From Lepidodermella squamata (lineage: Eukaryota; Animalia; Gastrotricha), in assembly GCA_047495785.1 (NCBI GenBank), contig JBLDXI010000003.1, positions 2,852,001 to 2,916,000 of the forward strand: 64,000 bases of DNA, in the 5' to 3' direction. Under the pieces are notes generated by a model. That model was not told where the DNA came from. It ran no database searches and worked only from the letters and a program-made list of their open reading frames with translations. Positions 30,748-53,925 of the stretch are shown here, piece after piece. The position numbers and the translations under genes are program-made. How positions within the stretch are numbered: position 1 is the first letter of the stretch; the number at the start of each line of letters is the position of its first letter.

Positions 30748-31036
30748 CCTGATTGCTGGTTTGATGATCAGAAAAAAATATTCCCATCAGGACAATTGTA
30801 CTGAGATCGTATGACCTCATAAAATGGCATTTTTTTAACCTACGCTTTTATTTATTTTCAACTTCTTTATTGCAGTAGATTGTAAACACCAAACCGAAAT
30901 CTATTGCAAAATGTAATAATCAACGGACCGAATTTTGTACTTGTTTTATTATGAAATTCCGGACAGCAAGCGAAGCTCACGTGAGAAAAAAACTGAATCA
31001 TTTAAAAGCGGTTTCGTCCTGTAAACCGATGTACAA

Positions 31037-31532
31037 TCAATTGCTTGCTGCATTCCATGCATCCGTGGTTTTTGTAACAAGCATTTTGGCTGCGACTACG
31101 GCAACGATTGCTACTGCTAGGTTAAGGTCAAACCCTGGCGTTGTCGAATCGTTACACAGATCCGTTGTGCAGCAGAAGACATCGACGCAGATTCCGAGGA
31201 TGCAAGTGTTGTTGCTCGCTGTGCACGATGTTTGGCAAGCTTTAGTGTAGCTCTCCGATCCGCCGTATTTAGTCACAGTTTTCTACATATAAAATCACTC
31301 AAAAAAATAAGAAATTATGAAAATTAATGTCTAACCGAACAAGCAGCGTATGAAGTGTCGTTACAAGTTGCAGACACTATGTTACCGGACCCGGAGTAGC
31401 ATTGGAGCGCCGCTGCATAAATTAATTGGAATGCAACCTCAACGAAGGAAATAAAACCAAGGTGCCTGATATCTCACCTGTATGTTGGAAAAATGCAAAA
31501 ATCAAAACTGTCAACAGAAAACTGATGAACAT
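31037..31532 (-). CDS. Ly6/uPAR (three-finger) family protein, probably GPI-anchored, ~125 aa
   Basis: Exons 31532-31478 (signal peptide), 31412-31336 (AALQCYSG...C...C) and 31282-31037. Ten Cys with an LxCY start and a CCTTDLCN end, then a hydrophobic C-terminal segment. Confidence 0.85.
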
Positions 31533-33015
31533 CCTTGAGATTAGAGCTCGAAAATGGAATGAAAATTTGTTTTGTTATAGGTGTAATAACCAATGCAAGT
31601 CCATATATTGTAACTGTCGCCGCTTATATAATGTTTTGCTCCACCCTCGTGTTTATAATGTCGATGAGTTTAGAGTTGTTAAGTGTTTTTCAATTAAACA
31701 TGCCCGTTAATTAAAAGAAGCGTGACTATGCAACAAATGTAGGCGCCTTGCAACGTTTAATTTGCTTCAGATGGAAAAAACACAGCCATGGGGTAACCTT
31801 TTTAGGAGTGCCTACCGCCTACCTAATAATATTGTCTGTTTCAGGCTAATCTCCTAATTTATCATCATGACCGTTGACAAGTGAAAAACTGAGTTTGGCA
31901 TTAAAAACAGCAACTGCGCAAAACAGCGAATGCGACAAAACAGCAAATTTTTTATTTCGCGACAAAACTGCGAAAACTTACTAATGTAGAAGATGCATTG
32001 TGTTTCTGCTGTTATGCCGCAAGTTGAAATATCTTCTGTTATGTCGCGTTTGCTGTTTGGGCCTTTGCTGTTATGACGGTCTGCCGTCAATTTTCAAAAA
32101 ATGAGCCGAGAAATTTCCGCTTCTTTTTTTATTTTTATTTTTCTTGTTAGGCTTCCCTTATGATGAATGCTAAAATGACTAAAACGCCCTAACCCATTTG
32201 AGCCCAACGGCATCTTATCCTGCCACCCTTTATTTAAAAAAACCCTGTAGGGTGACTACAACCCCAGGGTGTCTAAAAGGCCTATCTCCGCGCTGGGAAA
32301 TCGTATAAATTCAGGGAAAAAGGATAAAAGACCAGTGTCTCGTAGGCTTGGTGGTGAGCTAGGAGCCGTTTTTTGGGACTGTCACCAAACTGCACTAAAG
32401 TGTCATCAAAATCGATTTTTCACGAAGTATCACCTATGACCCAACTGAATGCATTTCTAGATAGATCTCATCACGCTGACGAACTTTTTCTTTGAGAGCG
32501 GCTTCCTAGCTATCATCGTTCTTGAGATAATCGTCCAGGTGTGACAAAAGGTTGGGTCACGTGACAACTTGACACTGGAATATCTCAATGACGGTAGATG
32601 ATAAAAATATGAGGTTTTCGGATTCTTAATCCCCGAATTTTTCTCTATCGGAAAAGCACGTGTCAATAGGGAAAGAAAAATAAAAATATTTTCCGAAAAC
32701 ATTCTGGGCTTTAACGACGGTTGACCTCGAAATGACTGGAGACTGGAGAATAAGGAAGCAACGTAAAAAAATTTGCCACGCTGAACATTTCCATATAATT
32801 TTCCTAAAATTTTCAATCCTTTATTTTTTTTACCATTCCCAAGTTTTATATCTTGACCCGCTACATAATTCGGAAAATTCGCCAACCATACCAGATCGGC
32901 GTTTGTCTTCTGTATTGTTTTACTACCATAAAATGCAATTCTTGAATTTTCTGAAGGTCCAATCTATTAAGGTCCATCACGTCTCGTGCAAGATAACTTC
33001 ATTAGGTATTCCAAA

Positions 33016-33736
33016 TCATAAGAAAATTGCTGCAACAATTATGATTGAGACGGCAATTACTACCATGACGATAACCAGAATAGCCCGCTTGAACACCATG
33101 CAAGATTTACTATCTCGATCATCGGGAGTGTAATAGTGGATTCGTCTTGTAACTTGGCTATTCGTATTATTGCCTGCATTACGGCTTGTGGAACGAGCAG
33201 TTTCTCGGCCTCCATTTCGCTGGCTAGCACCGTGGTTTTGAGTAGTCGATGGTGCCTGTGGTCGCACGTTGGGCTGCTGGGTCCTCGTTTGAGTTGTGTT
33301 GTTCGAATAGCTAACTGTCAGATTGCTGCCTTCAATCGATTGTCTAATAATTACTGGACCAGCAGCTGGGTCGAACGCAGAATAAGGCGGCGGTGGCTCC
33401 GCGATCACAGTATCTATCGTAACTGTTGCGTGATTCTGCACATATTCATCGCTGTGGTAAGGTGGAGGAACACGGCTGGTTCTAGGAAATATTATTTTAA
33501 CTGCCAAAAATAGACTGCGAGGTCCGATATGTGGATCTGAATCCTGGGCCTGACAACATTTCTTTTATTTAAGGTCAACGATGCGTCGTTGGGGAAAACG
33601 CCTGACGGCGAAATGTAGGCCATAGCCCGGGATTAGGATCCAAATATCGGATCGAGCAGTCTATTTTTGGCAGTTAAAGTGTTAAGCGGACAAATTATCG
33701 ACGCTCAGAAACTTACGCGCTGGGTCCATTATTCAT
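33016..33736 (-). CDS. Small tail-anchored membrane protein with two PPxY (WW-binding) motifs, ~161 aa
   Basis: Exon 1 33736-33717 (MNNGPS, GTAAGT donor) and exon 2 33481-33016 join in frame. VPPPY and PPPPY motifs, polar disordered middle, single C-terminal hydrophobic helix AILVIVMVVIAVSIIIVAAIFL. Confidence 0.7.
33501..33673. mobile_element. 173-bp MITE with ~50-bp imperfect TIRs and TTAA on both sides (piggyBac-type target), in the intron of the PPxY gene
   Basis: TTAA|CTGCCAAAAATAGACTGC...GATCTGAATCCTGGGC versus GCCCGGGATTAGGATC...GCAGTCTATTTTTGGCAG|TTAA. Confidence 0.75.
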
Positions 33737-33913
33737 TGCAATTTTATCCGGTTGGTACTGTTGGTACAAAATTTATTACTTTTTCTTATCATTACGCTGA
33801 ATTCCGTTATCTTGCTCACATTACATTAATTTCACATTATGATAAGAGTGAAAACTTTCTAAATAGGAGGTTGAACTAGGTTAAACGCTATCTGAGTCAT
33901 GAGACGTACTATA

Positions 33914-34267
33914 AGGACGCCGCGGCTTGCAGAAAATCAGAGAAGGCGTGATATTTTTAATGAGGTCCAAAGTCCAACTCCACCAATCAATCATCTCATT
34001 ACATTTTTTGCAATCATCTCAAGCCTCTTTTTTACTTGAAATCAACGAGATCAACACATCTTTTCACAGCATCTGGCCGATCTTTTGCTGTAATTGAATT
34101 CTCAGCAGTTTTTAATTATTGACATTAAAAAAATTAAAATTTGATAAATTTAAAAAATTTCAATTTCTAAATTACCGGACAAAAAATTTAATCGTATTCA
34201 CGGAATAATTATTCACGGCGGGTGGCAACCAAGTCATGTAATGGGAGCTTCGAAGCCGCGGCGTCCT
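33914..34267. mobile_element. MITE with perfect 15-bp TIRs
   Basis: AGGACGCCGCGGCTT (33914-33928) and AAGCCGCGGCGTCCT (34253-34267), with an AT-rich non-coding interior. Confidence 0.6.
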
Positions 34268-34518
34268 ATCTGAGTTGGTGGATTCAGCCATTTACATATT
34301 TAAATTGGGTAAATTCTCAAGTTTTTTCTTGAGAAAATTTTTGTATTAATTTAATTTTTTGTAGTGATCCATGATTAAGTTATTAATAATTTCCGAAAGA
34401 AAAAAGTCTCTTAATTTATAACCTTGATTTCACACTTTATTCACAAGCTATATTATAAATTAATTTTCAGATCAATATAGCTTATCAAAAAAGTTCTTTT
34501 GACCATGTAAATTGGTCT

Positions 34519-35288
34519 TTAGTTGGAGACGCTGACGGACTTGCTGACGGAGTACGAGCCCTTGTTGGCCTTGTGACCGCCGAAATTGTGGCCCCACTTG
34601 TTTCCGAAATTATGGCCATACTTGTTTCCGAACTTGTGGCCGTATTCGTTTCCAAAGTTGTGGCCGTAGTCATTTCCGAAATTGTGTCCGTACTTGTTTC
34701 CGAACTTGTGGCCCCATTTGTTGCGGAAATTGTGGCCGTAGTTGTTGCCGAAGTTGTGGCCCCACTTGCCGCCCTTCTTGCCGTGCTTGCCGTATTTGCG
34801 AGCACCGAATCGGTTGTTGCGCTTGCCATGACGAGCACCCGAGAACGAGGCGGACCTGGAGAAGGAGACAGACTTGGAGACCGACTTGTTCTTGCCGTGC
34901 TTGCCGAACTTGTGACCACCGAATCGCTTGTTCTTGCGGTTGCCGGAGAACGAGGCGGACCGCGAGTAGGAAACAGATTTGGAGACCGACTTGGAGAAGG
35001 ATCCGCGGCGCTTGTTCATCTTGCGGCCGAACTTCTTGCCACCGTGGCGCTTCTTCGGGGCGTAGCCACCCTTCTTAACGAAACCTGCGTTGTTTTCGTA
35101 CGATCGGCTGACCGAGAGGCTGGTTTTCTTCGAGTAGCGGCGGTTCAGCTCTTTCGACTCGAACTTGTTAACCGTCGCATCGGCATAAGCTGACGGGGAA
35201 TAAAAAGGTTGACCTCGATCATCACTTGACCTAATTACTTACCGATGCAAATGAGGGCGAGAGCGGCGATAGCGAGACAAGCGCGCAT
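34519..35288 (-). CDS. Secreted basic protein with 8 tandem (K/N/D/E)(W/Y)GH(N/K)F(G/R)N octapeptides, 238 aa (long family member)
   Basis: Exon 1 35288-35243 (46 nt), exon 2 35189-34519. Signal peptide MRACLAIAALALICIAYADA. Shares KMNKRRGSFSKSVSKSVSYSRSASFSGN and the C-terminal KANKGSYS-x-SKSVS-x-SN with copies A-C. Confidence 0.88.
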
Positions 35289-36499
35289 TTTCCTGAGATT
35301 GATGATGCAATCGAAAAAATAATAAGGAAGATTACTGATAATTTTCTCGATGATTTCAATCCGCTTTTATACCGAGTTTTCGCTAATTAAAAAGTTATTC
35401 CAATGCGCAGAATCCTCTTTAAGTTCTGATAATTTGCGCATTATTCTTGAATATTCTGCAGCTAATGAGCGTTCTAAATTTTGAAAATTCAGAATTTTCA
35501 AATTATGATCCCAAAAAAATAAAAATTTATTCAAAATGAATTCGCAATTATGTCTCGTAATTTTTATCGGAATGTCATTTTACTTTGATCCATCATCAGG
35601 TATTTATTTCTATACGAGCAACTTTGTTTCACGTTTTCGACATGTTTGTCACTTTTATAGCACAAAATAGTAAGCCTCGATTTCGATATGGGGTTTCCCA
35701 TGGGGCTGGTTCCAATTCAACCGAGCCGACACCGAAGCGGAAAAATATGAATGTCATGTCTCCATTACGGCATCTTCTTCAAAGTGGCGGCGCCCCACTT
35801 CGGACTGAAATAAGGCCGATTCAAGTCAAGAAACCAGAGCGATCGAACATGAAGGCTTTCGTAACAAAGGTTGAAAGGATAACATTTAGGTGAAACGATG
35901 AAATTTAATTTCTATATGATATAGTGCTGCTGTGAATTAAAAACCGGAGCTAACCAATGCAATGCTGTTTCTGGAAACACGTGCAATAGCACAAATACGT
36001 TTTGTATTCACCCTGCTAAGGTAGATGGACTAACGATTTTCTCCAAATTTGTAAAAATTTAACATGAAGTTGCAGATGGCAAAAATTCATAGTGACGCCA
36101 ACTTTGCGTGGCCGTTTTCAACCAAGCGGAACGGGATTCTGCGGCAAAATCAATTGTTTCTAATTTATTTGTTGTAAATCAATTAATTAATGAAAGTTAT
36201 TATAAATTTCATAAAGAAAATAATTAAATTTCGCATTTCTATGGCGACTGGAATTGTTTATCGGCTGAAGTAGTCTCGCGTCGCCTCGCGTTTGCTGGTG
36301 CTGAGGCGTCAAGTGGCTAACGTGAGGTGGGTTAAGCTGGACTTGTACGTTTCCTGTTCGTTATCGGCCGATATATCCGTGTTGTAGGTGTACGATCCTA
36401 CTCCTGAGCATCCTCAGATTGTATAAACAGCCAGCCAAGTTCAGCACGCCTCAATATGCCTTCCTCAATCTTATAAGTATCTGTGAAACATGCGGTATT

Positions 36500-37030
36500 G
36501 TTACTCAAGAGTAAACAAATTATCCTTTCCATTATCATCCGTAGTTGCATTGCATCATTGAAGATGGTGAAAAAGAAATGATTACAAGTTCTGTGTTGTT
36601 CACATCCATTTATTGACTTTGCGAACAAAGAATCGACAGATAATGATTGAATAAATAATGCATTAGATAACATGGCCTACTGACATTCACCTCAACTAAA
36701 CTCAAGAACTTTTCACAGTATTGGTGAGGTATAGACGACAAGCAGCTGAAAAAAACAGGTCCAGATTGAAAGAACAAGTCTATTGCTGTTAGCTGGTTGT
36801 AGTAATACAATATGGTATGAAATAAGCTTGAATGACATCAATGTCTCCGCTGAATAGTTTCTAGCTGAAAGCAAGAGTCGAAGAAGTACTGAGTAGGTAT
36901 TCTTTAAAGTAGAATAAACAATTCCGAGATGAGGAAAGAAGTAAAAGTAAACTGATATAACAGTTTTGATCAGAGGTCACTCATGAGGAACACAAGCTCA
37001 TCAGATGTGATAAAGACATTTTAGATACTT
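36500..37030 (-). mobile_element. Possible decayed non-LTR retrotransposon (ORF2 3' region) remnant
   Basis: Frameshifted fragments PHL (~36925-36933) and LETIQRR (36844-36864) resemble the RPxLEY...LExIQRR motif downstream of RT in CR1/L2/Jockey elements. No intact ORF. Confidence 0.3.
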
Positions 37031-39059
37031 CATACTTCTGTTACTTCGGTTAATTCGCCAGCTAGGTCATCTAACGTCAATAGTACAAACAAATCAATCC
37101 GCTGCCAGTGAAAACGGGGCGAAATCAACAAATGCGTTGCTTATGAAGATAGGAAAGAAGTTGGAAAAACCCGTGACAGATCTGCATACCTCGGATGAAA
37201 TTACGCGAGTTTTCCGTATCTGTCACGCGTACTGTCACACATATCTGTAGAAGGCATCACTCGAATTTGAAAAGCCGTAATAAAATGCTCGAAAAAAGGC
37301 AATTTTTGCAATCAATCGTGAAAATAGATGGCATCTTATTTTAAAAAGCAGGCAATCAAGATCGCGAATTTGGAAGGATGACAAGTTGTACGAGAACACG
37401 AGAGGACAATACTGGTCTGACATAATCGCCATTGACAAAGGCAGTCGATGAAACACGCATGAACGTTGACTGCGATCGATTGGGCTGATGAGATTCGGCG
37501 ACTGAGTTTCAGAGCTAGGCATAGACAGCGTTTGTTGAAGTTGAGGAATTGGATCGAATATTGCAGCTAATGGAATCGTTTTCGGCGCGTGGAAGGACTA
37601 ACATAAGGAAATAAAAGGAAAATGATCGATTTGTTTTAACGAAATATTAAGGTGGAATTTTAACATTTATAGTGAAAAAATATTACGATTTTCGTACAAA
37701 TAAATTTTCAATAATTTTTCGATTTCGAGAATCCTTTCGGAAAGACTTTTACTGCGATTTTTCTAATTTAACTCCCATAATATAATTGTCCAGAGTAAAG
37801 GAAGGTTCAAACTTCAAAGTGAACGAAAGTCTCGCAAATATAGGGGCTTGAAAATTCTGCTTGAATTCGTTCAAGCTTCATGCTTCACGCTGATCGAAAT
37901 ACTACAACCAGACTAAAATTAGACTCCTTGCTCATTGAGACGTTCATAATTGGTCGAGATGCAGACTGAAATCACCGGAAAATTCGAGGAAACGCTGAAA
38001 AAGCCCTTTTTCAGGAAAACAGGCTTGAAAATCGATGATAACATTTCGCATTATTCAAACTGGACTTTAACGTCGAAAATTTAATGACTCTCCTCAAAGT
38101 CTAAAACTTCCTTCATAATTCCTAAACAGGGTTCCAAAGTAGGAAATTATGGACACTCCTCAAAGTTGAGCTGAAAAACTGCGATTTTTGTAGAACACTT
38201 TGCCCATTCAAAGCGGCCCCAATCTATTTTGGATATTAAAATTGAAAAAAGCTATTGACCAATTAGCGGAAAGTCTGGATCAGCAAGTGTTAAGGGTCAC
38301 GAAAAAACGAGGATTCAATGCGATAAATTCTTCGGACGGACCTGTCGGACTGTCAAAAACATTCGTACCCTGAGCTAACCATCAAGCTAACCATCATCCC
38401 TAAATTCGCCCCCATCCGCGAAAATGTTGCGATAACTTTCCGACTTTCCGCATGAAAGAAAATCTGAGATTGGCGACTTCAACCGCAAAATGAGCCGACA
38501 AACTCGCGCCGTCAAACAAGCAATTTTACGTTAAATTGAAGAAATTTAACGTGTTGAAATATCTAAAAGCTCTGGGTTAAAATATGACCCAACGGGGTGA
38601 AATCGAGTGAAATCGCGATGTAGAGACGTGCCTAGCTGGCAGCCAATTTCCACGTGATGAGACAATGGCCAGAAAATGATTACGACTTAATATTTGACTA
38701 ATTCATCCCAAAGGGTAGGAAAAACAACGAGGCAAACGAGTAAAACAAGATCGGGGTTCATTGGCTAAATTTCAATTAATACTGAATCGAAATAAAAAAT
38801 TCCCAAATTATTAGGAGAAACTGATTATTGAAAATTGGAATTTATTTATATTTTCTCGACCCGCCAGAAGAATGTCTTGTGAAACATGTATATCAGATTT
38901 TGAAAATAAAAAATAAAAAATCAAGGTAATTCCAAAATTTTTGAAAACTGGGAAAATTTTCAAATTAAAAAAATAAATAAATAAAATTGAAAATAAATTC
39001 AATATTTAATATTTGAAAGGTCAAGAGGCAGAAAGACAGAGGAAATAATTACCGTTAGG

Positions 39060-42000
39060 TCACTGATTGATGCCAACGAGAAATGGCCGTCTGTCATTGC
39101 AACTGGAATCGTCGTCAAAACGCCATTCGATGTCCATCCCGGCCGAGTGAATAACTTCATGAAGTCTGATGTTCTCCTTTTCCATGAGTTGCTTGGCCAC
39201 ACTGCAGCCGCTCGTGGGACAGGTTGTGTTGTCGCGCTCAGTCTTCGCCGATTTGTGCCCACGCTCGATGGCGACTGTGTTAAGGGCGAGAATGTCCCAC
39301 TTTTCAGTGGCGTCGAAGAAATGGGACCCGGCATCTGTAATAAAGTTAAATAATAAATCAATCGCAAAGATAAACAAGAAAGCCGTTAATTTACAGTGAC
39401 TGTAGGTAGTGTGCCGCTGCTTCAGGGTGAACATAAGGTCCTCCAGTTTGTGGAACTCTTCCTCACGCGGCCTTGGAACAGATCTCTTATTTTTAAAAAA
39501 GCGCAGTATCGACCGGAAAACTCGCGTAATTTCATCCAAGGTATGCAGATCTGTCACGCGCTTTTCAACTTCCTTCCTATCTTCATAAGCAACACCAGCA
39601 GCATCGAATTCGACGAATTTCTCGACAAATTGGTCGCTTGTCGCTTTCGCCACATTTTGAATCGCAGCCACAGATTTCTTCGAGGTCTTCATGATTTGTG
39701 TGTACTGACGTCTGAGGATCGATGTGTCGCATTTGCTGAAATGTGCTCGGACAACTTGGGCCCTGGTCAGCAGAGGTCTCGGCTCCGTGATGATAAGGTA
39801 ATGGCTAAGGAGAAAGGCATTAGCGGCATCGTCGTGAGTGGGCATGACAATGTCAACGCTGCAAGACGTGAATTGCGCGCCTTTGGCCGTCACTTTAATT
39901 TTCACGGCGTTTTTCGTAACACCACTGAGCGTTTCCATAATGGTCTTCGCCGTGTCCATCAGATTGCCGTCATACAGGATGGTAATTGTCTGGGAAAAGA
40001 GTTAAATAGCGGAAATCACTAATTATAATAATATTAAAAAAAAATTTGTTGAAAAAATGGAATAGTTTTAGGGACCCAAATTTATGTGTAACTAAGAGTC
40101 CAACGTAAAAATTTACCCGGAACCAAAAGATTCAAACACATTATTTTGAAAAATCCTGAAAATAACACAATAACTTCAAGCAACATAATTGGTCGCAATT
40201 TAATTCAGCTTGAGGTCAATTATCAGGCGGCAATTTGGTTCCGCTGATAGCAGGGCTTGTGAAAAATAATAAGGGTGAATACAAATAATGAAAATAACCT
40301 AGAATTTTTCAACGATATTCCTATCTCAATGAAATAATATCTCATGAATTTCAATTAAAGAGGGCGAAATACCGTTTTTCGGGAATTCATTCAGTAATTC
40401 ATCTGCCACACTGGCTATAAATGGCGAGAGAAAGTGATAAATTCATAGCCTTATCAAAGCAATTTAGCAAACGAAAAACACAAAGAGAGAACTATTTTAC
40501 CACTTTTATCAGCGTCTCGGAGTATCTAGCGTTGAAATGGAGCGAGTCTGGGATGATATTGGCAGCCTCAATGGGGAGCAGCGGCAGTTCAGTGTGGCCG
40601 AGGCCTTGCGCATTGACGTCGACAATTGCTTTTTTTGTCGACTTTTTCCCTGCGGGCGTGCGCCCAGCCACGGTGAAGCCGATCAACTTCCTCAGATTTG
40701 ACAAATCGCGATAGTTACGGTATTCTCGCCGCCCAGGAGTAGGGTCATCGGCTCGTTTCACGCATATGGGGCAGATGTAGTCGCCCACAGGTGACCCAGC
40801 ACCAAGGAGTACAATGGCAGCCATGACATCCACACATAGTAGAAATCGAAAGTGAAACGTTTCGCCCCAGATTTTCACGCCGTTCTCATCAACCGCGATG
40901 ATCTTTAAACAAATATAAAAAATATTACAATAAATTCTCAGGTATATTGATTGGTAAAATTCTTGAAAAAAATACATGGATTATTATTTGAAAATAGCTC
41001 AATAGTAGAGGCAAATCTATTTTGATTTAAACGGGAAATTCGAGCATTAGAAAATCCGAATTTTTTCATGGAATTAAATGGCGGGTTTACATAGATGAAA
41101 AAAAAGAAAGGAAGATGGAAAAGTCAGTGGGGTTAGAGGACATTTCTGAATTATTGGAAAAATTATTGGAAAGAAAGAGTTGGTAATTTTTGCATGGAAG
41201 TGAGGCGAAATGAACCGCGCTCGATGCGAGGCTTAACGGTCAACTGAATAACCAGAGCCATTTCAATTCTCGCAACCCTCAGCAACTCAGCAAAATATTC
41301 CACAAAAAACTCCGATTTTATAATTTCGGACAGAATTTCTAATTAAAAATGATTAAAATATTTTCCAATGCGAAAAAATAATTAGTTCTGAAATTTGTCA
41401 AATTTAAAAAATCGGAGAAATATGCGATCCACGCTAAAAGGTTCTGCGACCACTTGCTCGAAAAAAACAGGTCGGCCGTCAGGGATTCAAATTCAGGCGC
41501 GAATTCTTTTTAATATATTTGGTCCATTAATCGATTCGAATAATAAATTAAACCTGTTCGAAGACTTTTCCGTAATAGTGCGCTAGTTCTCCACGGCCTT
41601 CCTCGTCCAAAAATAAACCAATTGCCACTTCGTCACTAGTGGTGGGACTGGTTTTCTTTTCCACGAGGGTGACGTTCATGCGCTCCATCGGCTGGCCTTG
41701 TTGTCTTGCTGGCGTGTTGTCGAAACAGAGACGCAGCTCGTGAGGGTGATGTGATTGCAACGAATGAAGCCCAACCAAGACATACAGGACGTCAATGAAG
41801 TCGCGACAACACCCACCCGTTTGATTATTCTTGATCATCACCTGTTTGCCATCAACCTCCTTCGTTCTCTAAAAATTGGAAAAAAATGATTTCCGAATCC
41901 GTGTTTTTAGGCAGTTTAACAATTTAATTTTTAAACACCAAACGAGAAATTCTTAAATTTGCCCGAAATCGCAAGAAAAAAGGTATTCAGTCCCAAACTT

Positions 42001-45000
42001 GAACTCCAAAACCACAATTTTAAAAACCCAATTGATCCTCAAATAAACACGCTGTCTAAATGCTATTCCCGATCACGGGTATAGTTTCAATAAAATATGA
42101 TATTATTTCTCAGCAATTACACAAGGTTAAATGACGGCTCATTTGTCTTTTTATTCTTCTACAACACTTCTCTCTTCAATATTTATGTAATTAAAGGTCA
42201 TTATACTGTAAGTAGCGCATCAAGCATTCCGGTAAATCTAAGGCAGATATGTCTTCTGAGCGCTGATCCAGCCCCAGCCGTAATCGGTTTAACACAACTC
42301 GGCGTGCGATAGACATTAACGATAACATAGGCCGCTTCAATAATATACCGCCATAGTTGTTGGCAATTTCTAATATAAAAGGCCTGAGAAGGGGATTGTT
42401 CAGTATTAAGGACGAGTCATGGCTTTGAAATGCGCTCTCCTCCACTCGACAGCCGCATTGAGCAAACCTCTTGATGAAGAAATGAAATAGTACTAATTTT
42501 TCCTCCAAACTGATGTCAGGTTTGCAAAATTCAATCATAGCCAGGATAAGCCCGTGCCGACGGTCAGTTGCTGGGATGGCAGCTTGGGCACCGCTCACGG
42601 AGAAAATTGCGCGGACGAGACTTGACCCGTCGTCGCGTACCTCGTCATCTTCATCGATGAATTTAAAGGCAAATTGTAGAAACCCTGTTTGATGTGGCAA
42701 CAGGTATCTTTCATCGATGAAGCTGGACGGGCCGTAGAGAAATAAGTCGCGAATTTGTTCAAAATCTTCGTTCTCAAGGGAGATGCCGTGTTCGACACGC
42801 CACGCAAATTCAGTCATCGAGATTGACAGCATGTTTAACAATATATAGTAAATTAACCCGAACAAACTAAACAAACAGAGTTATTGTGACAGGGTTTGAA
42901 GTTAAATTTTCGACAAGGCTCGCCGTAGGACTCATATTTTGAGCTGCTTCAAATCTGGCCGTCTGTATTCCCAACAATAACACGAACGAAGTCCCCATCC
43001 AAGCCGAAAATCGAGCTTTGAACTTAAACGAAATCCAAGCCGAAATCTATGAACGACTGCCTGGAAGCGAAACGCAGACGAATAGGCGAGACCAGCCGAG
43101 ATACTTGGCCTTTGGATTTTATCACGACACAGCAACCACTCGTTTGGTACGGAGGTCGTCGGAGTGGAAAACTACTACTATCCACCCGCCCGCCCGCTGA
43201 TCAATAAAATCATTCAAGAAGCCGCAGGTTTCATGAATTTCTATCGCAAAACTGAGCTGAGTAAGGAATTCGGGATGTGGCAAGGTCATTGAGGTCAAAC
43301 GACAACTGGTGCTCTAACTCTCGAAATACTACTTTTCGGATAACTGAGTACATAAAATTTGCCAACCATCTTGCCAGCATGCTAGCCAGCTCTGTTAACT
43401 TGCCGCAAACATTAGAATTCATTCCTTCTTATTCTTTGAAATTCAAATACCATGCCTTAGTTAAAACATTGAATGAAAAGTTGTAAATAAAAAAATTTCC
43501 AATAAAATAATTAAGACATAATTGAAATATCGCCAGCTTTTATCTATCAGAAGAAGAAAAGCCGCAATTTGCTGTCCCAATAAATGCAGCGTGTCCAATA
43601 AGTAACGCAAGCAAAGAAAATACACAGGAAAGGGAAATACACATAAATAACTGTAAAATGAGAGACCAATTCACATCTAACGGCCAAAAATATTTAGAAA
43701 AATTAAAAAATTACTACAATGGTAATCAAGTATGCCAGTTGTTAAAAGGATCATAAAAGTCTAGAGAAATTTTGTCCAACGGGGTAAAATACCGAAAATT
43801 ACCGAACCAGTTACCATCGGGATTTTCCGGGTTTTCTCTGGTAAATTTCTAATTTATTCGGTTAAATCGGATAAATCAGATAAAAGTCGGACTTTTCTGT
43901 CGGTAGGTACAATTTAAAAAAAATATTTGAATTTCCAACAAAAAGTTGCCAAATTAAAAATAGTAGCGCAACTTTTGGGATTATTTTCCTGTGCGCGGGA
44001 TTTTAATTAAATAAACTTACAGGGTAAGGCTGGATTAGATGTAGCGGTAATGACTCAGCCAGACCTCTCCTCTCCTGCCTAAAGGTGGCTCGATTGATGG
44101 GGAACTTGGGAAGCAGGCTTTCTGTAGTCCGACTCGATATTTTGTTCGCAGTTTGGAAATACGCCATACTAAATTGAAATAACAAATAAAGATATTTAGT
44201 ACATAAATAGGTAATGTGGTAGATGAAAGTAGATAAGATAAATGTGAATTCGAGGTCAAACAGTTGTCTTCAAAAACTGAAATAATTACAGAGGAACCCC
44301 GATTTGTATGAACTTGGCGAAAAATCTGGCGAAAAAATAAAATTAAAAACGAAATTTTTTTTGAAATCGTGCAAAATAAGCAGGAAATAAAACAAAAAAA
44401 AATAAATCACCCTAGAAAAATCGGAAGCATCATAGTTAATTTATGATTAGGCATGGATTCGCATGCCCGAATGTAATCCAATGCCAGACCTAAATTAATT
44501 CATTGATATGATTCGTATACAATTCCGAGAAATGCTAGATATTTTTAACGCTTGCTTCACTCGGGAAAATCAACCAAACATTATGGTATAATGAAATGAG
44601 CAGAAAAACAACAAACTCTTGACAAGCTTGAGGAGACTTTGAGCCTAATGCGTTGCCGAAAGTGCGCACATAGGGTTTCATAACGCCTTTCAACGGCAAG
44701 TTCAAGGCTATGGTTGCTCCTGGGACGGATCGCTTCTTCAAGGTCGTTTCCAAGTCAGAGAACGTGGCAGCTCTTCGCCTGCACTGACCGGAAGCTGACA
44801 GGTCGGCATATTCTTTCGGCGGCTAAAAAACAAGAAAAATCGGCCAATTGAAAACCGATGTTATGTTCCTGAAATCTCACCCGATTCGTAGGTTCATTCA
44901 CCGAAGGTTGCGAAGAGGCAATAGTGTTGCGGCGTTTTGATGATTCGTGTGTCGTCTGTAGGAAAAAAAGTCATAGCATTTACAGCTAACGATTACTCTT

Positions 45001-45160
45001 AGCATTAGATACTTGTCGTCGTTTGGATGGTCGGCCTCGCTTCGGCTTCACCGCTGCAGATTGCTATAAATACCCAAATTTCTAAATTAATCAATAAATA
45101 TATCCTTGAAATTACCTGTTCATTAGTAGTAGGCTCCGATTCTGTTTCGCTAGGATCCAT
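39060..45160 (-). CDS. RAG1/Transib/Chapaev-type DDE transposase, 9 exons, 703 aa, catalytic residues intact
   Basis: Phase-consistent exons 45160-45116, 45063-45013, 44955-44881, 44822-44617, 44168-44021, 41868-41554, 40902-40501, 39989-39395, 39334-39060 (2112 nt, no internal stop). Motifs in RAG1-core order: AT-hook KRGRP, KEYADLSASGQCRRR, LRLCFD (D1), IGLFLDEE, FRFLLCVD (D2) with GDYICPIC, PLLP...IPDSLH...R, TTYSHYAGSH and AIERGHK (E). Confidence 0.82.
42191..42832 (-). CDS. SOCS-box protein, ~213 aa, intronless, nested in intron 5 of the transposase
   Basis: C-terminal PMLSLMSIARRVVLNRL...ISALDLPECLMRYLQY fits the SOCS box (BC box SLxxxC/ARxxV plus Cul5 box LPxxL). The N-terminal part is unrecognised. 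Confidence 0.65.
   Translation of the reverse strand: MLSISMTEFAWRVEHGISLENEDFEQIRDLFLYGPSSFIDERYLLPHQTGFLQFAFKFIDEDDEVRDDGSSLVRAIFSVSGAQAAIPATDRRHGLILAMIEFCKPDISLEEKLVLFHFFIKRFAQCGCRVEESAFQSHDSSLILNNPLLRPFILEIANNYGGILLKRPMLSLMSIARRVVLNRLRLGLDQRSEDISALDLPECLMRYLQYNDL
43587..43991. mobile_element. Tc1/mariner-type MITE, degenerate copy (family of 58746-59127)
   Basis: Begins CAGCGTGTCCAATAAG. Interior GGTAAAATACCGAAAATTACCGAACCAGTTACCATCGGGATTTTCC matches the reverse complement of ~58896-58943. Confidence 0.7.
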
Positions 45161-45721
45161 ATTGTTTTAAATGAAAAAACTAGACAAAAGAGCCAGAGAA
45201 ATTACAAAAAATAATGGGGGAAATAAGTGGGCTGAAAATTAATGAAGATGTAGGCAAAAACGTGATTAAGAGATAATAAAATGGCTGAGACTAGAAAAAA
45301 TTTAGAGAATTAGGCGAAAGTGACAGATTGCGACAGTTCGGAACAGAGGAGGTAATTACGTACAAATAATTGGCAACGAGACAGACAGCTTAAAAATTAA
45401 ATAAAAATTAAAAATAATATTAATAAATGATAATGAAAAATTTTATTCACTAAAGCGAGTAAAATTTTTAGGAAAGATGAGCAATGCTTGGTCGCTATTT
45501 GGACTTTATATCACTGTACTAATTGGATCCATGCTTGATGCATGGTGCGTCGAGTGGACTCATTAGAAAGTTATTGCGTTTTGTAATTATTTATAATGAG
45601 AATTCCAATTAAATTACTAGAAGTTGAGAAATTCTGGCTGTTCAGCAACGGAGGGAACATTGGCAATCATACCCATTTGAAGAAAGAAGATATTTTTCAT
45701 TTTACACTAACAAATTTGGTT

Positions 45722-46223
45722 ATGAAATTGCGTCGTCGGCCAACAAAGCGCCCGCACCGTTATGTGCCTGTGAACTTTCGTCAAGCGAAGCAGGCAAGGC
45801 GATTGGTGAGGAACGGTCCGGCCTACGGTCCGCTCCGCGCCCTTGGATCTTATGTATTCCGCGACCTGAAGCGGCGAAGAAGGTCGACGGCAGTGGTCAC
45901 CTGCCGGGAACGTGCCCCAATTAGCCGTGTTCGTTTCGAAGCGCTTCAGGATCGGTGAGTAATAAATTATTATAATTGGAAATGATAAGGTTAACCCTTA
46001 AATTTCATTCAGATTCAACCAGATAAGATCACGGCGCCGATTTCAAATAAGCACAATTGAGCTTCAGCACTTAATTGGGCTGAATGAAAATGACGAGAGG
46101 CTACATTCCACATTAGTGGGACCAACGGCAACCCTTTGGTTCAAGCGACTGGAGGACGATATATCTCCTGACTGGGGAGAACTTGTGTTAACTTTTCGCT
46201 TGCAAAGAATGCAAATAAATTGA
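45722..46223 (+). CDS. Small basic two-exon protein (147 aa) with a C-terminal retrotransposon-gag-like motif; head-to-head with the transposase
   Basis: Exons 45722-45954 (GTGAGT donor) and 46013-46223 join in frame. Arg-rich N-terminus. LVGPTATLWFKRLEDDISPDWGELVLTF resembles the LxGxAxxW...WxxLxxxF gag capsid motif. Confidence 0.5.
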
Positions 46224-46988
46224 GAGCTGAAATTAATTGTTAACCAACTATTTTCAGCGGTGTCTAGCAGTTGGATAATAATTTTTTAGAAATCAAATAA
46301 AAATGTAATGTTCGATACCCATATGGTCTGAAGATTAGATGCAATTTAGGTTCATCCGATTCAGCAGTTTCCGCCGTGAACGAATATTATTTTCCGCATT
46401 CTCGATAACAAATACCGTAACGGGTCCCAACTTTGGACAAAACACCTTTTTTAATTAAAAAAATTAGGGTTTCGTCTAAAAAATGGAAATAAAATAGCCT
46501 AACGTTCTTTCTGAGTGATCTAGTTTCGGCGATTATTCGCAAATCGATAGTATATGAAAGTATTGGCAAATTTGGTACCGCTGGAAAGTCCATTAATCAA
46601 GCTATTTTTCACCGAAATTTTTATATTATCAGTTATGCAGCACGAATTGATATTCGGGGCTAACGCTTATAAAGTGTCCAAATTTGGGGTGTCCAAATTT
46701 AGGGCGAGTTACGTTACCTGTTTTAGGTTCATCATATGTTGGCGGGGGGTAACATTATTTCTCGAATTCCAAAGGCTAGTGATACACATGTACCCAACTT
46801 GCCATGGTTTTTAATCATAGAAAAAAACCCACAAATAGAATTTTTTATTACGTTCTCTGCTCGGAGTTGCGGCTTTTACTAGTAATTATTGTTAAATTAT
46901 TACCCGTGATTTAGAGCGACCTTCATTTATTGAGGTTTGATTATTTCAATCTGAGAGATTATTAATTAATAATCCATGATTCATAACA

Positions 46989-48103
46989 TTAGGCGTCTTT
47001 CTTTTCATTCTCGATCAACTTCTTCCCTCTGAGCCTCTCCGCTTTGCGCTTTTGAGCTTTCGCGAACAGCGACATGCGTTGCAAGTCTTTTGCGGAGGCA
47101 TTTTGGTCGTAGTCAAAACAGATTCCGCAAGCCGCACAATTTCCGTCTGGTTTGAGAGTGCGCTGGCATTGATAGCATATAGTTGAGTAGTCTGGGGGCT
47201 CATCGTATTCCGGTGGGTCCTCGGGCGATGGTGGAAAGTGGTGGACGAAAATGCCCGGAGCAAATTCAAACGACTCCTTAACAATGAATAGAAGTAATTG
47301 GAAAGGAAAGAAATTAAGAAATTTACGGCCACAGAATAATCAGACATAGCAGTTGGGCTCAGAGTGGGGCTGGTATCACCAGGTTGTGGCGGATGTGGAG
47401 GCGATAAGACTCCACCGCGTCCCCGGCCACGCCCTGGGCCACGATTGGCAACGTCCAATGGCTGAGGAGTTGCAGGTTCGGGCGGGGTTGTAACCGAACG
47501 AGGTCCACCACGTCCACGACCGCGGGTGGAACTGTCCATCGGCTCATCTGCATGAGCCGATGGCTTGGCAGAGGCAGAATCGCCAGGGCAAAGCGGGGGC
47601 GAAGGCATCGCTAAAAGAACTTGACCACGGCCTCGACCACGTCCACGCCCACGGTTCATTTCAGCTGACTGAGGCGAAGCCTTGGTGGAGCTGGAAGTGC
47701 CGCGTCCGCGACCTCGACCCTGAGTGGAAGTCGGTTTATCGGGCTGAGAGAAAGCCGCCGCTGACTTAGGAGTGCCACGCCCCCGACCCCGATTGGAACT
47801 GGGTTTATCAGGCTGAGAGAAAGCCGCTGCTGGCTTGGGTGTACCGCGCCCTCGACCACGAGTCGTAGTAGGCTGAGGCGGCGGCCTAGCCGAACCATCT
47901 CGATCGCGTTGTTGACCCCGAGTCGTAACTCTGAGTGACTTATCATCAGAAGAAATCACAGACATTGATCGTCCACGACGATCGCTGCCACGACCACCAC
48001 TACTAAAACAACCACCAGGAGCGCCATGTGGAACCTGAGCCAATGGAGATGAAGAAATGGGGGTCAAACTATCACTCGAAGGTATCAACACAGGTGATGA
48101 TGA
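46989..48103 (-). CDS. RGRGRG-repeat, S/P-rich protein with a C-terminal CxxC-x9-CxxC zinc ribbon; 5' exon(s) not resolved
   Basis: Exon ~48103-47327 with six RGRG(RG) blocks, a 50-nt GT-AG intron, then exon 47276-46989 reading ESFEFAP...ICYQCQRTLKPDGNCAACGIC...KRKAERLRGKKLIENEKKDA*. Confidence 0.6.
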
Positions 48104-48223
48104 CTGAAACTGGACATTAACGAAATGAATTATTTCCTCATATTTCAGTTTGAAACATTTAAAAAAAACCGCTCTGCGGTTACACGATAATAAGTAAAAT
48201 TCATAAAATTAGCAATACAATTT

Positions 48224-48606
48224 GTGCCATAAGTAACGCAAGGAGAGAAAATACACGAAAAAGGGTTAAGAAACTCTAAAATGAGAGACAATGTCACATC
48301 ATCTCATGACCCTGATTTTTTTTAAATTTCACAAATATTGGAAAATAATTCCAAAAATACGATATTAGTAATCAAATATGCCACTTGTTAATGGGATAAA
48401 AAAGTCCCAAGAGATTTGGTCTAACCGGGTAAAATACCAAAAATTACCGAGCCAATTTTCCGAGTTTTCGCCAGTAAATTTGTATATTCTCCGATTAAAT
48501 CGCGGGTTAAGGATGTGCGATTCTCCGGGTAGTATGTAGTTTCAATCTCGAAAATTGATCAAATTTATTGCAAAAAGGTACAAATTTAAAAAATTGTGGC
48601 GCAACC
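48224..48606. mobile_element. Tc1/mariner-type MITE, degenerate copy (family of 58746-59127)
   Basis: Colinear with 43591-43972 (ATAAGTAACGCAAG, AAAATGAGAGAC, GGTAAAATACC-x-AAAATTACCGA, GCGCAAC). Confidence 0.65.
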
Positions 48607-48972
48607 TAAGCGACAAGCTGTAATTCGACTGAAATAATTTGATCAATTTGATATTAAATTTATTTAGAATCAATCCGCTTAAAGTCGAATTTTTATTTCA
48701 ATTGGTAGATGATTTTCGAGTTTTCATACATCAGTGACACTTTGCGGGTTTCTAAACTTGAGGAGGATAGGAATTTCCATTACTTTGAAACTTCAAATGA
48801 AATAACATTGAGGAAAACTAGGTAACTGGTTATTTAAACTTTCTGAAAAATTGGAAAAAATACGGGCGTTGCCTACAGCTCGAAAATATTAAATTTTCGC
48901 TTTTCCCTATATTGTTTTTTTTTTAATAAATTATCAAATAATGGTCAGCGACGTTCAGTCTGAGGCATCGTA

Positions 48973-50697
48973 TTACCTATTACAAAACACGACGTAATCT
49001 TCCAAATTGAATACCTCAGAGCTGCAGTTGTTTGGACCGGATTCCGCAACTGTCCGCAACAAACGAAAATCGATTGCGCCGGGTGTTTTCTGCACCAGCT
49101 GTATATCGCCTCTTGCCGCGAGTCCCAGCAAATGGCTGAAAAGAAGGGCTGCTGATGAGAGACTTCTTGACACCAGGTCGTCGAAAGACTCGCTGGTCTC
49201 GCACAGCAAGAAAACGTCGGACTGGCTCAATTTGGCGGGTTGGGACTCACGCGAATCGGCCGGTGGTCCATCGGAGGTTCCGGGCTCTTGGAGCGGGCTC
49301 ATGGGCTGAGGTAATAAAGAGTCCTGGCGAGCCTCTGAAACAGCTGGTACTGGAATTTGAGGGGAAAGCGGAGAACAGGGCGGGTTTATGGAGGGTTCTG
49401 CGATGGCTGGTTCCAAACTTGGAGATGATATTGGAGAACGGGACGGCTGCATGGATGATTCGACGATGGCGGGTTCCAGAGTTGGAGATGAGAACCAACA
49501 TTTCTCCCCTAATTGATCGCTCAGGAGATCATAACGAGCCACCCTCTCTGCCATGGGGAGGACATTGAAACTGTGACCCTCAGCTAAAGGGGGACAAGGA
49601 CACTTTTCTCCTGGGGGAAATCTAATGCTGTGAATCAACAAATCCCGGTCAATCATCGGTAACCGGAAGAATTTGTCCCAATACCCGGGTCCATGGTTGA
49701 CCACCTTCCAGCCTGGAAAAAGGCTGTCCTTCAAGTTACGACTGATGTCAATACTACATCCTGCCATGAGCCGATCGAGATTGCAGACAGCTGCTGCGTT
49801 CATCAGCTGCCGAGATTGAGGTGCTAGCGTCATGGGCGCAGTGTTGCAATTCTCGAGGAAACTGGGATCATCGTCGATTTCCGTCTCTACGTCAATTGCA
49901 ACTTGGCCTGGCTGTCTTTTCGTTTTCGGCTCACCTTGAGCATTCTCGGCATTTTCAACCAGGATTTCGGGAACAAAATCCATCGCCAGTTCATCGATTT
50001 CCATATCGGGAACATAATCCATCGCCAGTTCATCGATTTCCATATCGGGAGAAGAATCCGCAACGCTCAACTGAATGTCCTCGTAGTCAACGGCCGAACA
50101 GGAAACTGGGGCTGGAATCGCCAGATCATCCAATTCCATGATGCTAGAGGCTGAATGCAAAACTTGGGCTTGCATTTCTAGGTCACCTAGATTCATTGTA
50201 TACGACGAAGTGTCCTCAGGTTGAATATTTGCATTCAAATCAATTGGCAAAGAATCGCGCGGTTCAATGGCCAGATATGAATCAGCCTCCCTATCAACTT
50301 CAGCTGTTGCGGGAGCATAATATTCCTCGAAAAGTCCTGCTAAAAATAGGTCGTCGTCGACGCGAGAGATACAACGTGGCTTTTGAGAGGCTGGAATTTC
50401 CGGCAAATCGATAGATGGAATGTCACGAAAATCGGTAGATAGGGGCTTTATCCAACTCTCGGGGTCGTCAACAGTATCAACGAAGAGTTTCCAGGCATCA
50501 GTGAACAGAAATTCCACCTTATTTTGGTAAACCCTCGATAGCATCAATAAATGCCGGCTCTTCGAACAATAATCTCTACGGCTCTCCAACACTTGTCTAG
50601 CCAAAGGAGGTATTTGCACATTCAAAACAAAGGGCCGATGTAACATGTTGCTTAGAAACTCGCGGTCAAGGCAGATCAAACGGTCCAATCTCGTCAT
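48973..50697 (-). CDS. Divergent alpha-kleisin (Rad21/Rec8-like cohesin subunit), ~574 aa in one long exon
   Basis: N-terminal HLLMLSRVYQNKVEFLFTDA resembles Rad21 [21 protein letters not shown]. Central KRQ...IDVETEI resembles KRK-x-IVDxxxEL. C-terminal winged-helix SFDDLV...AALLFSHLLGLAARGDIQLVQKTPGAI resembles AAAKFYSFLVLK...IELTQEEPYSDI. Long acidic/Pro linker. A possible donor at ~48976 means the end may be spliced. Confidence 0.72.
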   Translation of the reverse strand: MTRLDRLICLDREFLSNMLHRPFVLNVQIPPLARQVLESRRDYCSKSRHLLMLSRVYQNKVEFLFTDAWKLFVDTVDDPESWIKPLSTDFRDIPSIDLPEIPASQKPRCISRVDDDLFLAGLFEEYYAPATAEVDREADSYLAIEPRDSLPIDLNANIQPEDTSSYTMNLGDLEMQAQVLHSASSIMELDDLAIPAPVSCSAVDYEDIQLSVADSSPDMEIDELAMDYVPDMEIDELAMDFVPEILVENAENAQGEPKTKRQPGQVAIDVETEIDDDPSFLENCNTAPMTLAPQSRQLMNAAAVCNLDRLMAGCSIDISRNLKDSLFPGWKVVNHGPGYWDKFFRLPMIDRDLLIHSIRFPPGEKCPCPPLAEGHSFNVLPMAERVARYDLLSDQLGEKCWFSSPTLEPAIVESSMQPSRSPISSPSLEPAIAEPSINPPCSPLSPQIPVPAVSEARQDSLLPQPMSPLQEPGTSDGPPADSRESQPAKLSQSDVFLLCETSESFDDLVSRSLSSAALLFSHLLGLAARGDIQLVQKTPGAIDFRLLRTVAESGPNNCSSEVFNLEDYVVFCNR

Positions 50698-51299
50698 TGC
50701 GATTCTAAGAAATGAAAATATTGATATTTCAAAATTGATTTCGCTAACAGCTGAGTCTGACATCAGTTCCGATTTTTTTACTAAAAATCTATCATAATTC
50801 ACCAGCATTTTTCTCAATTTTTTTAATTTTCTTAAAATCATAAAATAAAATCGTAAAATATTGATCGAAATTATCAAGCATGCTGCTTTCTAGCGCACAA
50901 GAAAAATGGCCAAGAAATTATTCCATACCTTCTTTATTAATTGCTCAATATTTTAATTTTACAGAAATTAATTCATCTAAACATACATGCGAGTCTTGTA
51001 TTTAGCAATAGTATCACCTCACTTTACAATTAATAATGGTAATTGTAGTGACAGGAAAAGTCATCTGTTGCTGGGGCACCATTTCCCACAGCCGGCAAAT
51101 TTCTTGTATCAAAATTTCGAAAATTAAATTTGCCCACAAATTTCGCGATGAATTATCATGTGCACAACGAGCGATTTAACCAAACTATGTGAAACCGCAG
51201 ACTTGGGATAATTAAATTTCATAAATTTTTTAAACGCCAAAGTTAAGTTACGTCCCTCTAAACTCTAATCCAATCATGTTAAAATGTCTTTCGATAAAT

Positions 51300-52423
51300 C
51301 AGTTATATCCAGAAATTGTTTCGCTTGATCATTAATTAGAGAAAATCTATTTTTCGTACATGTTGGAAGCCATTCTACGCATCTCAGCAAAGCAAAACTG
51401 CCTCAGGGTGCCTCGACTGAACTTGAGAGCAACTATTCTCGCCAGTGCCAGAACGATTGACCAATTTTCCACCATCATTCTTGGATCGTCACTGTAACAA
51501 GAATAATAATAGAACTGGCATAATATATATGAATTAAATTTTACTGAAGTTCGCGCGAAACCGTCGCCAGCGTCCGAAACCCCAAATCCGATACCGCTTT
51601 GGTACCACTTAGAGTCGACCTGGCCGAAAACGGTTCCGAAACCGAAACAGATCGTTTGTCGACCCTTACGATCAAGTTCGCCGCGTCAAATTCAGCCTCC
51701 GAAATAAGGCAGCTATCGCTTTTGTTATTCCCAGGAGGCAGACGGAGGACGAGTAACTTTTTCAGTTGCCTGGCAATTATTTTCAACCGCTCTTCTTCCT
51801 CCACGTTTTCATACAAGTATGTAGCCACAGAGCAAAAAATGGCAGGATTTTTCGCCATATACTGGTTATCGAATCTGAAATTTGAAGAAACGTTGCAATA
51901 TAGAGGACAATTTCCAAATTAAGTTTCAATTCTAAATCTCGCAATTTAACCAAATAACAGACAACAATTCTTACTGCGGTAGATGGCTTTCATTGTTGCG
52001 ATTTTTTTTATTTTTAAATAAAATTTTAGAATAATTTTAAAATAATTCTATAAAATTTTTGAAAAGTTTTTCAACATTTTTCAGATTTGTTTCGATTTTT
52101 TAATTTTTTCAAATTTTTAAGAATTTTTCTTGCAAATCTAGGACGTATCTCTAAAAAATCTGCTACATCGCAATAAATTTACCTATTGCCTGTTTTCTGA
52201 GCGGCGGCTATCATCATCTCCCCAAGAAACCGAGTTGGACTTGACCTGTTGGCGCGTAAGGAAGCTTTCAACTCTTCAGGGCTCAGTCCAGACTGGCGAA
52301 TTTCTGGCAGAAAAGACAAAATTAGTCATGAAATTTCAAATTATTGCATCGTATCACACTTTCAAGAGCCTTGTTCGACGCATTTTCGGGAACGAACTCG
52401 TAGGGATCAGCCATATCAGCCAT
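51300..52423 (-). CDS. Multi-exon protein of unknown function
   Basis: Phase-consistent exons 52423-52350, 52303-52183, 51874-51545, 51491-51360 (MADMADPYEFVPEN...RFDNQYMAKNPAIF...GTLRQFCFAEMRRM). The last exon is uncertain and no family was recognised. Confidence 0.45.
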
Positions 52424-52635
52424 GCAGCGTTCGGGTTAAATTGAAAAGTACCAGCAAATAAAATACTATATCGTGGTACAAAATGTTTGGAAAAATTATG
52501 ATTAATTGAAGGTAAATTCTTGTTCCAGATTACTAATTTCACCGTTTTCGCAATGACAAATAGTAATACAGCTGAAGAGAAGTATATGACAGAATGATAT
52601 GACAGAAGTCATACGCATTTTCAAAATATTTCGTT

Positions 52636-53284
52636 TCAATTCAGAGCCAACCTCCAGCCCGTCAGATGCTCAATGAAGTGCTCATCGCACATTGGCGGCT
52701 TGCCTTCACATTGGCCACAATAGAAACGAGTTTGTTTTCCCTTGAATCTTGCATCCTTATTGCTCAAATTTTTAATTATTACCCCTTCATCGACGCACCG
52801 CCTGCAGACCTTTCGCACAAGTTTAGGTCTTTTCGGGTCTTCAGGTACCCACAGATCACCGTTTGCTATTAAGAACCGCTGATGAAGGGCGCAAGAGCTG
52901 CCACAGCTCGGATCTTTTAACAATAAAAATAAATTTTCTTGAATATATCAAAAAATCCTAATATTGGGATTATCCCGTACTCTTAGGCGAGACATGGGAA
53001 TTAGAAGTTGGTACATCAACACGTTGCGTGGGACTTCGCCGTTTCGTTGTAGCGCTATCGCCAACAGGTTTGGTATCCCTAATTTTAGTTTCCTTTTCTA
53101 CTTCTTTCACAACCTTCCTAACAATAGGGCGCGTGGTCTGAAAAATAAAACCACTTATTTATACGAAGTTCAGCATCTCCATTGGGCTTACATTTAGGAA
53201 TCCACTTGCCCAGCGCGCTGATTCTTGCCAAGACGGGGGATCAATTTTCGTAAAATGTGGTTCCAAGAAGGCATAGTTACTCAT
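52636..53284 (-). CDS. 184-aa protein ending in a piggyBac-transposase-type Cys-rich zinc-finger domain, with no catalytic domain
   Basis: Exons 53284-53165, 53137-52981 and 52913-52636 join in frame. RKVCRRC...KQTRFYCGQCEGKPPMCDEHFIEH matches the RxxCxxC...KxTxxxCxxC...CxxxFxxxH C-terminal domain of piggyBac transposases. Confidence 0.65.
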
Positions 53285-53372
53285 CACACCAAATATTACA
53301 ATAATTATTTTTCTAATTTTCGATTTATCATGAATTATATTAACAATTCCATAATCGGAAATTAGGGTCATA

Positions 53373-53846
53373 CGGGCGCCGTCGTTCACAAAGTAAAAAA
53401 ACTGAGAAATTTTCAACACAATGGTTGCCCCCTTGAAAATTGCGATTTTGCATTAAATAACACAACCCAGTAGGTAATCGATGACGCTCTGCACGCTGGT
53501 TGCCGTTTTATCTCTCAATTATCTAACCGTAAACGGCAATTAGCAAAAAATGAAAATTTTCCAATCGAAGTGATTTTCAACTCATTTCTAGGGTTAAAAA
53601 ATCGTTGATTCCGAAAATCACATTTTCAACTCAAAATTCGGCGATTAAAATTTTTTCAAGTCATTTAGGTCCAGTTTTCGACCAGTTAGACTTGAAATAA
53701 AAATCTGGAAAATTCACCAAAATGTGCGGCTCAAAATGTGACTATATAGACCTGTTTTCAGCGTTCTAGAATGATTTTTAAGGGGGGTGACCATTGTCTC
53801 ACATGACAAAAATTTTGTAAAAATAATTTGTTAACGACGGCGCCCG
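53373..53846. mobile_element. MITE with perfect inverted ends and probable TA TSD (Tc1/mariner-type)
   Basis: CATACGGGCGCCGTCGTT (53369-53386) and AACGACGGCGCCCGTATG (53833-53850), an 18-bp inverted match that includes the flanking TA. Confidence 0.7.
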
Positions 53847-53925
53847 TATGGTTGAGAATCACTAATTTCATTTATAAAGATTTACCGTGATTTTTATTAC
53901 TAACTTTCTTCTTCGTATGCCCAAA

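Follow-up and report, generated by a model that had tools for sequence, protein, structure and literature searches.

What kind of gene, or genes, lies on the minus strand between positions 45160 and 39063 of the DNA considered here? The window, by which we mean the whole stretch analysed, comprises 64,000 nucleotides (nt) of the gastrotrich Lepidodermella squamata (assembly GCA_047495785.1, contig JBLDXI010000003.1, positions 2,852,001 to 2,916,000), and with a base composition of ~41% G+C it is eukaryotic DNA. A first-pass annotation had joined nine exons, E1 to E9, into one 703-amino-acid (aa) frame and described the product as a transposase of the RAG1/Transib/Chapaev type, either active or domesticated. 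The exons, splice sites and motif coordinates that it gave were accurate when the sequence was read again. On balance, we read the last four exons, at 41868–39063, as an immobilised and possibly host-kept transposase gene of the CMCT clade, the group that comprises CACTA/EnSpm, Mirage, Chapaev, Transib, RAG1, Plavaka, ESTA and Lanisha. Going by its motifs, this segment of the minus strand would specify the core of a transposase of the DDE cut-and-paste kind: a nuclease of RNase-H type in which a C2H2 zinc module interrupts the interval from the second catalytic Asp to the Glu. The element most likely lost its mobility while its transposase gene stayed intact, and the host may have retained that gene; the core sits in a same-strand cluster with a small SOCS-box adaptor gene and a set of 5' exons bearing an AT-hook.

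Spliced in silico, E6 to E9 (41868–39063) give a 528-aa frame with zero stops, interrupted by introns of 651, 511 and 60 nt that are all GT-AG. E6 (41868–41554, 105 codons) follows a strong acceptor, TTTTTAG, ending at 41869 (TTTTTAG/AGA, the slash marking the exon boundary), contains the first Asp (LRLCFDNTP, 41721–41719) and closes at the donor CAG/GTTTAA. The second Asp (LLCVDVM, 40830–40828) lies in E7 (40902–40501, 134 codons), together with residues of zinc-binding type, namely the C(2)C of YICPIC (Cys at 40773–40771 and 40764–40762) and the His of PDSLH (40539–40537). E8 (39989–39395, 198 codons and one base) encodes a mostly helical insertion region and terminates in HTTYSH, while E9 (39334–39066, stop codon 39065–39063) carries H(4)H, the Glu (AIERGHKSAK, 39266–39264) and the C-terminal tail; an ATTAAA follows downstream of the stop at 39010. 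Between E8 and E9 lies an in-frame intron of only 60 nt (39394–39335, GTAAAT...TTACAG). Its excision yields YSHYAGSH, with a second His pair 19 residues ahead of the Glu, and we count this restored His-to-Glu spacing in favour of a transposase. The earlier claim that a YSHxxxxH motif arises solely through removal of this intron holds for the pair at that distance from the Glu, whereas the unspliced frame already has one H(4)H in HTTYSH. In the spliced frame the residues are D50, D130, C149xxC152, the PDSLH His, H437x4H442 (YSHYAGSH) and E461; the two Asp are thus 80 residues apart, the second Asp and the Glu 331, the second Asp and the first Cys 19, and the last His and the Glu likewise 19.

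The succession D, D, C(2)C, H, H(3-4)H, E is the published signature of the CMCT clade (PMC12730594), and every one of its residues is present, in order, in spliced E6–E9. Comparison of protein-language-model features with the 7.7 million clusters of the ESM Atlas gave two leads in the same direction. The clusters nearest to E7 carry Plavaka and Transposase_21 (score 0.98, 206 of 256 features shared), and those nearest to E8–E9 carry RAG1_ZnH2, RAG1_ZnC2 and RAG1_RNase_H (0.91–0.93), with Plavaka lower at 0.89. The 19-residue distances from the second Asp to the Cys and from the His to the Glu presumably resemble the values in RAG1. Taken together, motifs, spacing and the two language-model leads make it probable, with good confidence, that the E6–E9 protein belongs to the CMCT clade, of which it appears to be an orphan and very divergent lineage at the level of sequence. 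The designation as RAG1/Transib/Chapaev-like stands in this broad sense, on the signature and the two pieces placed by the Atlas, but nothing singles out RAG1 or Transib. Because the signature is common to the whole clade, a RAG1-like motif set is no mark of RAG1 or Transib alone, and judged from the protein sequence a special relationship to RAG1 is not supported.

The known systems to which the locus can be compared each match it in part. With the CMC superfamily (CACTA/EnSpm TnpD, Mirage, Chapaev and the fungal Plavaka) it shares the D/D/C(2)C/H/H(3-4)H/E order, a long insertion between the second Asp and the Glu (331 aa here), the language-model affinity of E7, with its second Asp and C(2)C, for Plavaka/Transposase_21 clusters, and a passenger or helper gene adjoining the transposase, which here is a SOCS-box gene. 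It differs from that superfamily in matching neither PF02992 nor PF18759, in the absence from our findings of 5'-CA..TG-3' termini, terminal inverted repeats (TIRs) or 2–4-bp target duplications, and in being an apparently single-copy locus without sequence-detectable relatives. With Transib and RAG1, including RAG1-like/ProtoRAG, it has in common the signature of catalytic and zinc residues, an H(4)H whose last His stands 19 residues before the Glu, a C-terminal half (E8–E9) nearest to clusters of the three RAG1 domains, and an AT-hook-like GRP motif, found here in the candidate N-terminal exons. Set against these likenesses are the lack of a match to any Pfam RAG1 domain or to a RAG1 or HzTransib chain in the PDB, of a RING domain or RAG2-like partner, and of heptamer-like CAC...GTG ends or a 5-bp duplication. 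The two catalytic intervals are 80 and 331 residues, as compared with 108 and 254 in mouse RAG1, calculated from the residue numbers D600, D708 and E962 in the first-pass annotation. That annotation had seen no RAG2-like kelch gene and no CAC...GTG TIRs; we likewise obtained no kelch match by Pfam in the neighbouring long open reading frames (ORFs), a scan of the neighbours that was not exhaustive, and no such ends in inverted-repeat searches of the flanks.

We regard the element as most likely immobilised because this copy is intron-rich, apparently single-copy and without recognisable TIRs. Inverted repeats linking 31000–39060 with 45160–56000 (8 kb to the left and 11 kb to the right) did not exceed chance expectation (best E value 0.27), a result compatible with decayed or very short ends. 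Searches by tblastn and blastn for further copies within the window returned just an interspersed repeat, described below, and an 81-nt fragment of E8. The latter, at 37136–37216 on the plus strand, is an inverted and frameshifted pseudo-copy of 39514–39593, 94% identical to it and 1.85 kb past the stop codon; it may have arisen as filler DNA or be what is left of an inverted duplication. Given the missing TIRs and the single-copy depth, an active transposase is unlikely. Domestication is possible, as the frame is intact and all differences between strains in the exons are synonymous.

Those strain differences come from run X2, which is near-identical genomic DNA of a second strain. Seventeen fixed substitutions separate the two in 6 kb, eight of them in the spacer 41894–42104 and two in exons. 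Both exon differences, at 41767 in E6 and 39642 in E8, are synonymous (A>A and L>L); one further difference (39354) falls inside the 60-nt intron, and E1–E4 show none. In the same run, contigs of lower depth (from 41618–41805), with ~90% similarity to E6, connect 41805 with 42283 by way of 13 letters of foreign sequence, with a deletion of 477 nt. Their 13 differences in E6 are eight non-synonymous and five synonymous, and this copy looks like a pseudogene. As the contigs span 41805–42283, a diverged partial copy with SOCS and E6 sequence must exist elsewhere, or in part of the sample.

Several results weigh against the transposase reading. No transposase family was found by Pfam in any exon or candidate exon at E values up to 10, the SOCS box being the sole match; phmmer searches of the PDB with E6, E7, E9 and E8–E9, again at E up to 10, produced no chain of RAG1 or HzTransib; and an exhaustive phmmer search with the C-terminal 308 aa (E8–E9) against 1.84 billion representative proteins gave 0 matches. 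Word-index searches with E8–E9 and E7, whose length limits exclude full-length kin, were blank, as were scans of metagenome loci with the same two queries. An AlphaFold2 model of the C-terminal 308 aa, built without an alignment, reached a mean predicted local distance difference test score (pLDDT) of 41, too poor for a fold search. In the Atlas, E6 had no usable match, and E6 and E7 both fall below its recognition level. A loose D..C(2)C..H..H(3-4)H..E pattern turns up in 403 of 20,000 shuffles of the 528-aa frame (2%), and chance is accordingly an unlikely source of the motif order, though not a very unlikely one. Depth of the X2 contigs over the exons, flat at ~200–260 and equal to that of the flanks, looks like that of a single copy but is a rough guide that measures copy number poorly. 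The strain comparison fits purifying selection, yet with two haplotypes and an uneven background divergence it is weak evidence. Finally, run X1, which is possibly RNA and contains 9% of the words, assembled into short unspliced contigs with no splice joint, so that the junctions of the nine exons drew no support from it.

How far the gene extends beyond the core depends on what lies upstream. E1 (45160–45116) begins with an ATG at 45160 and reads MDPSETESEPTTNEQ; E2 (45063–45013), which reads QSAAVKPKRGRPSKRRQ, encodes the AT-hook KRGRP at 45042–45028 (KPKRGRPSKRR); E3 (44955–44881) is bounded by GT-AG; and E4 runs from 44822 to an ambiguous donor, the 5' exon group being listed as 45160..44620. 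The introns among E1–E4 are 52, 57 and 58 nt long, GT-AG and phase 0, the codon score of these exons is highest in the proposed frame, and besides the AT-hook they encode a basic Ser-rich region. Downstream, the frame of E4 stays open through a hydrophobic stretch until a TAG at 44538, beyond which there is no poly(A) signal. A candidate "exon 5" region at 43428–43105 has overlapping open frames with a weak coding signal and several phase-compatible acceptors and donors; the donors are poor (GTGGTT, GTTGCT, GTGTCG), and a short-intron scan combined with codon scoring did not fix a single exon 5.

Between E4 and E6, on the strand of the transposase exons, lies an open frame of 228 codons (42880–42194) that ends in a C-terminal SOCS box (Pfam PF07525, E value 1.1e-5, score 26 bits where the curated cut-off is 23.5, residues 184–223 of 227), with the stop codon three residues past the box. 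SOCS-box proteins are adaptors of Elongin B/C-cullin (Cul5) ubiquitin ligases, and the box itself consists of a BC box and a Cul5 box. The gene, placed at 42867–42194, has an acceptor, GTTTGTTTAG (TTTAG), ending at 42867, an ATG at 42835 that no other ATG precedes, a stop at 42196–42194 and, 39 nt past it, an AATAAA at 42155, one of just three on the minus strand in 6.7 kb; 286 nt then separate this signal from the acceptor of E6. The SOCS box is genuine, and its gene looks complete and self-contained. The AlphaFold2 model of the ORF is all-helical with a pLDDT of 52, too poor for a fold search, and a word-index search with the ORF, under length limits that exclude full-length kin, found no match.

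Two arrangements of these parts, to each of which we give somewhat less than one chance in three, account for the locus in different ways. In the first, tentatively entertained, a nine-exon gene from 45160 to 39063 would encode a transposase of ~700 aa with an AT-hook N-terminus, the SOCS gene being nested in a 1.3-kb intron or serving as an alternative 3' exon, in the manner of TnpA and TnpD of En/Spm (see below). The first-pass model survives here in its two ends, as E1–E4 and E6–E9 are well formed, but its passage from E4 to E6 is insecure, with an ambiguous E4 donor and exon 5 and with the SOCS gene passed over. On our preferred reading, too, E6 looks internal: it opens at a strong acceptor and has no unambiguous start codon, the first ATG in its frame (41838) sitting behind an out-of-frame ATG at 41852, so that the core probably continues into coding exons further upstream, which may be the AT-hook exons. 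The lack of a poly(A) signal downstream of the TAG that ends the E4 frame fits such a gene, as do the possible phase-0 joins from E4 to E5 to E6 (all other verified introns except the last are phase 0) and a stretch of ~220 residues ahead of the first Asp, a typical size for enzymes of this kind. The model is nonetheless unverified because it skips a whole SOCS-box gene; that gene being complete and having its own AATAAA, a nine-exon transcript must splice across it and ignore the poly(A) signal at 42155 on the same strand. The weak exon-5 donors and the lack of spliced reads in run X1 also speak against it. Moreover, at least three joins keep the frame, namely from E4 through E5 into E6 (phase 0 throughout), E4 (GA/GTTTGT) to the SOCS exon (TTTAG/T), and the SOCS exon (CA/GTATAA) to E6 at an alternative acceptor (AGAG/A), so that the frame runs equally well from E4 into the SOCS exon and from there into E6, and its continuity therefore does not discriminate between gene models.

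The second arrangement, which we hold to be just as tentative, has three independent genes, possibly in an operon-like or leader-trans-spliced order, for an AT-hook protein, the SOCS adaptor and a truncated core starting from ATG 41838. The core would then lack a DNA-binding domain and represent a remnant, either decaying or co-opted. Each of the three has an unpaired acceptor 19–31 nt before an ATG (45180/45160, 42867/42835 and 41869/41838), and an AATAAA follows the SOCS stop, ahead of the E6 acceptor. Opposed to this are the out-of-frame ATG at 41852 in front of the would-be start, and an AT-hook gene that would finish in a hydrophobic tail without a poly(A) signal; retention of all catalytic and zinc residues, together with purely synonymous strain differences, would also be odd for a remnant unable to bind DNA. 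The out-of-frame ATG opens an upstream ORF of four codons (41852–41836, ATG GCA AAC AGG TGA) whose stop overlaps the E6 ATG (UGAUG); it is irrelevant if E6 is internal, and otherwise would form a termination-reinitiation arrangement.

An explanation of another kind, which we think improbable, is that E6–E9 is no transposase at all but an orphan gene for a helical, zinc-binding protein in which the likeness of the D/C(2)C/H(4)H/E residues to the CMCT signature is fortuitous. In its favour are the uniformly blank homology searches (Pfam, PDB, phmmer, word index and metagenome), the low-confidence structure models and the 2% of shuffles that match the loose pattern, but it leaves to coincidence that two non-overlapping pieces each draw CMCT families from the whole of the Atlas and that the local contexts and both 19-residue spacings fit.

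Also improbable, at about one chance in ten, is a host-kept CMCT nuclease that through alternative splicing has its AT-hook exons in common with the SOCS adaptor, or even forms a fusion with it by way of the in-frame join of CA/GTATAA to AGAG/A. In En/Spm (CACTA), TnpA and TnpD are produced from one transcript by alternative splicing. The coding units there lie on one strand and have a common 5' region, with a second ORF within an intron of the longer product, an order that the genes at this locus recall by analogy only; the inner gene here is a SOCS-box adaptor and not a DNA-binding helper.

Several further features of the window were recorded. An interspersed repeat of ~390 nt at 43587–43980 lies as an insertion downstream of the 5' exons and upstream of the SOCS gene, and has copies at 58753–59127 (77%) and 48223–48502 (68%). 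X2 contig depth over it is 27,000–39,000, compared with ~230 in its flanks (>100x), with many internal deletion variants, and it has the look of a short non-autonomous element present in very many copies. On the minus strand at 47015–48091, a 358-codon ORF without a Pfam family contains 12-nt and 69-nt repeats (47411–47861) with abundant CCACG/CGACC, translated on the coding strand as Arg/Gly-rich sequence. Overlapping long frames of ~244 and ~176 codons on the plus strand at 34459–35190 are highly repetitive, with VAE[IV]V-like and CGR/CRT-like units, and again match no Pfam family. No matches came from scanning the window for Rfam families or tRNA genes.

To return to the core at 41868–39063, its main contribution, if it is read as an immobilised CMCT-clade gene, is one more lineage, orphan and very divergent, in a clade whose members are already known to share these motifs, and a RAG1-like signature by itself does not mark a special relative of RAG1. 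A shared or fused unit, if it were true, would link a DNA-cleaving enzyme of RAG1 type to a ubiquitin-ligase adaptor within one animal transcription unit. If the core is a functional CMCT enzyme, preserved as one gene without TIRs, this would be another animal that has retained a RAG1-type nuclease, and the fixed pairing of the gene with a SOCS-box adaptor would then gain functional interest.

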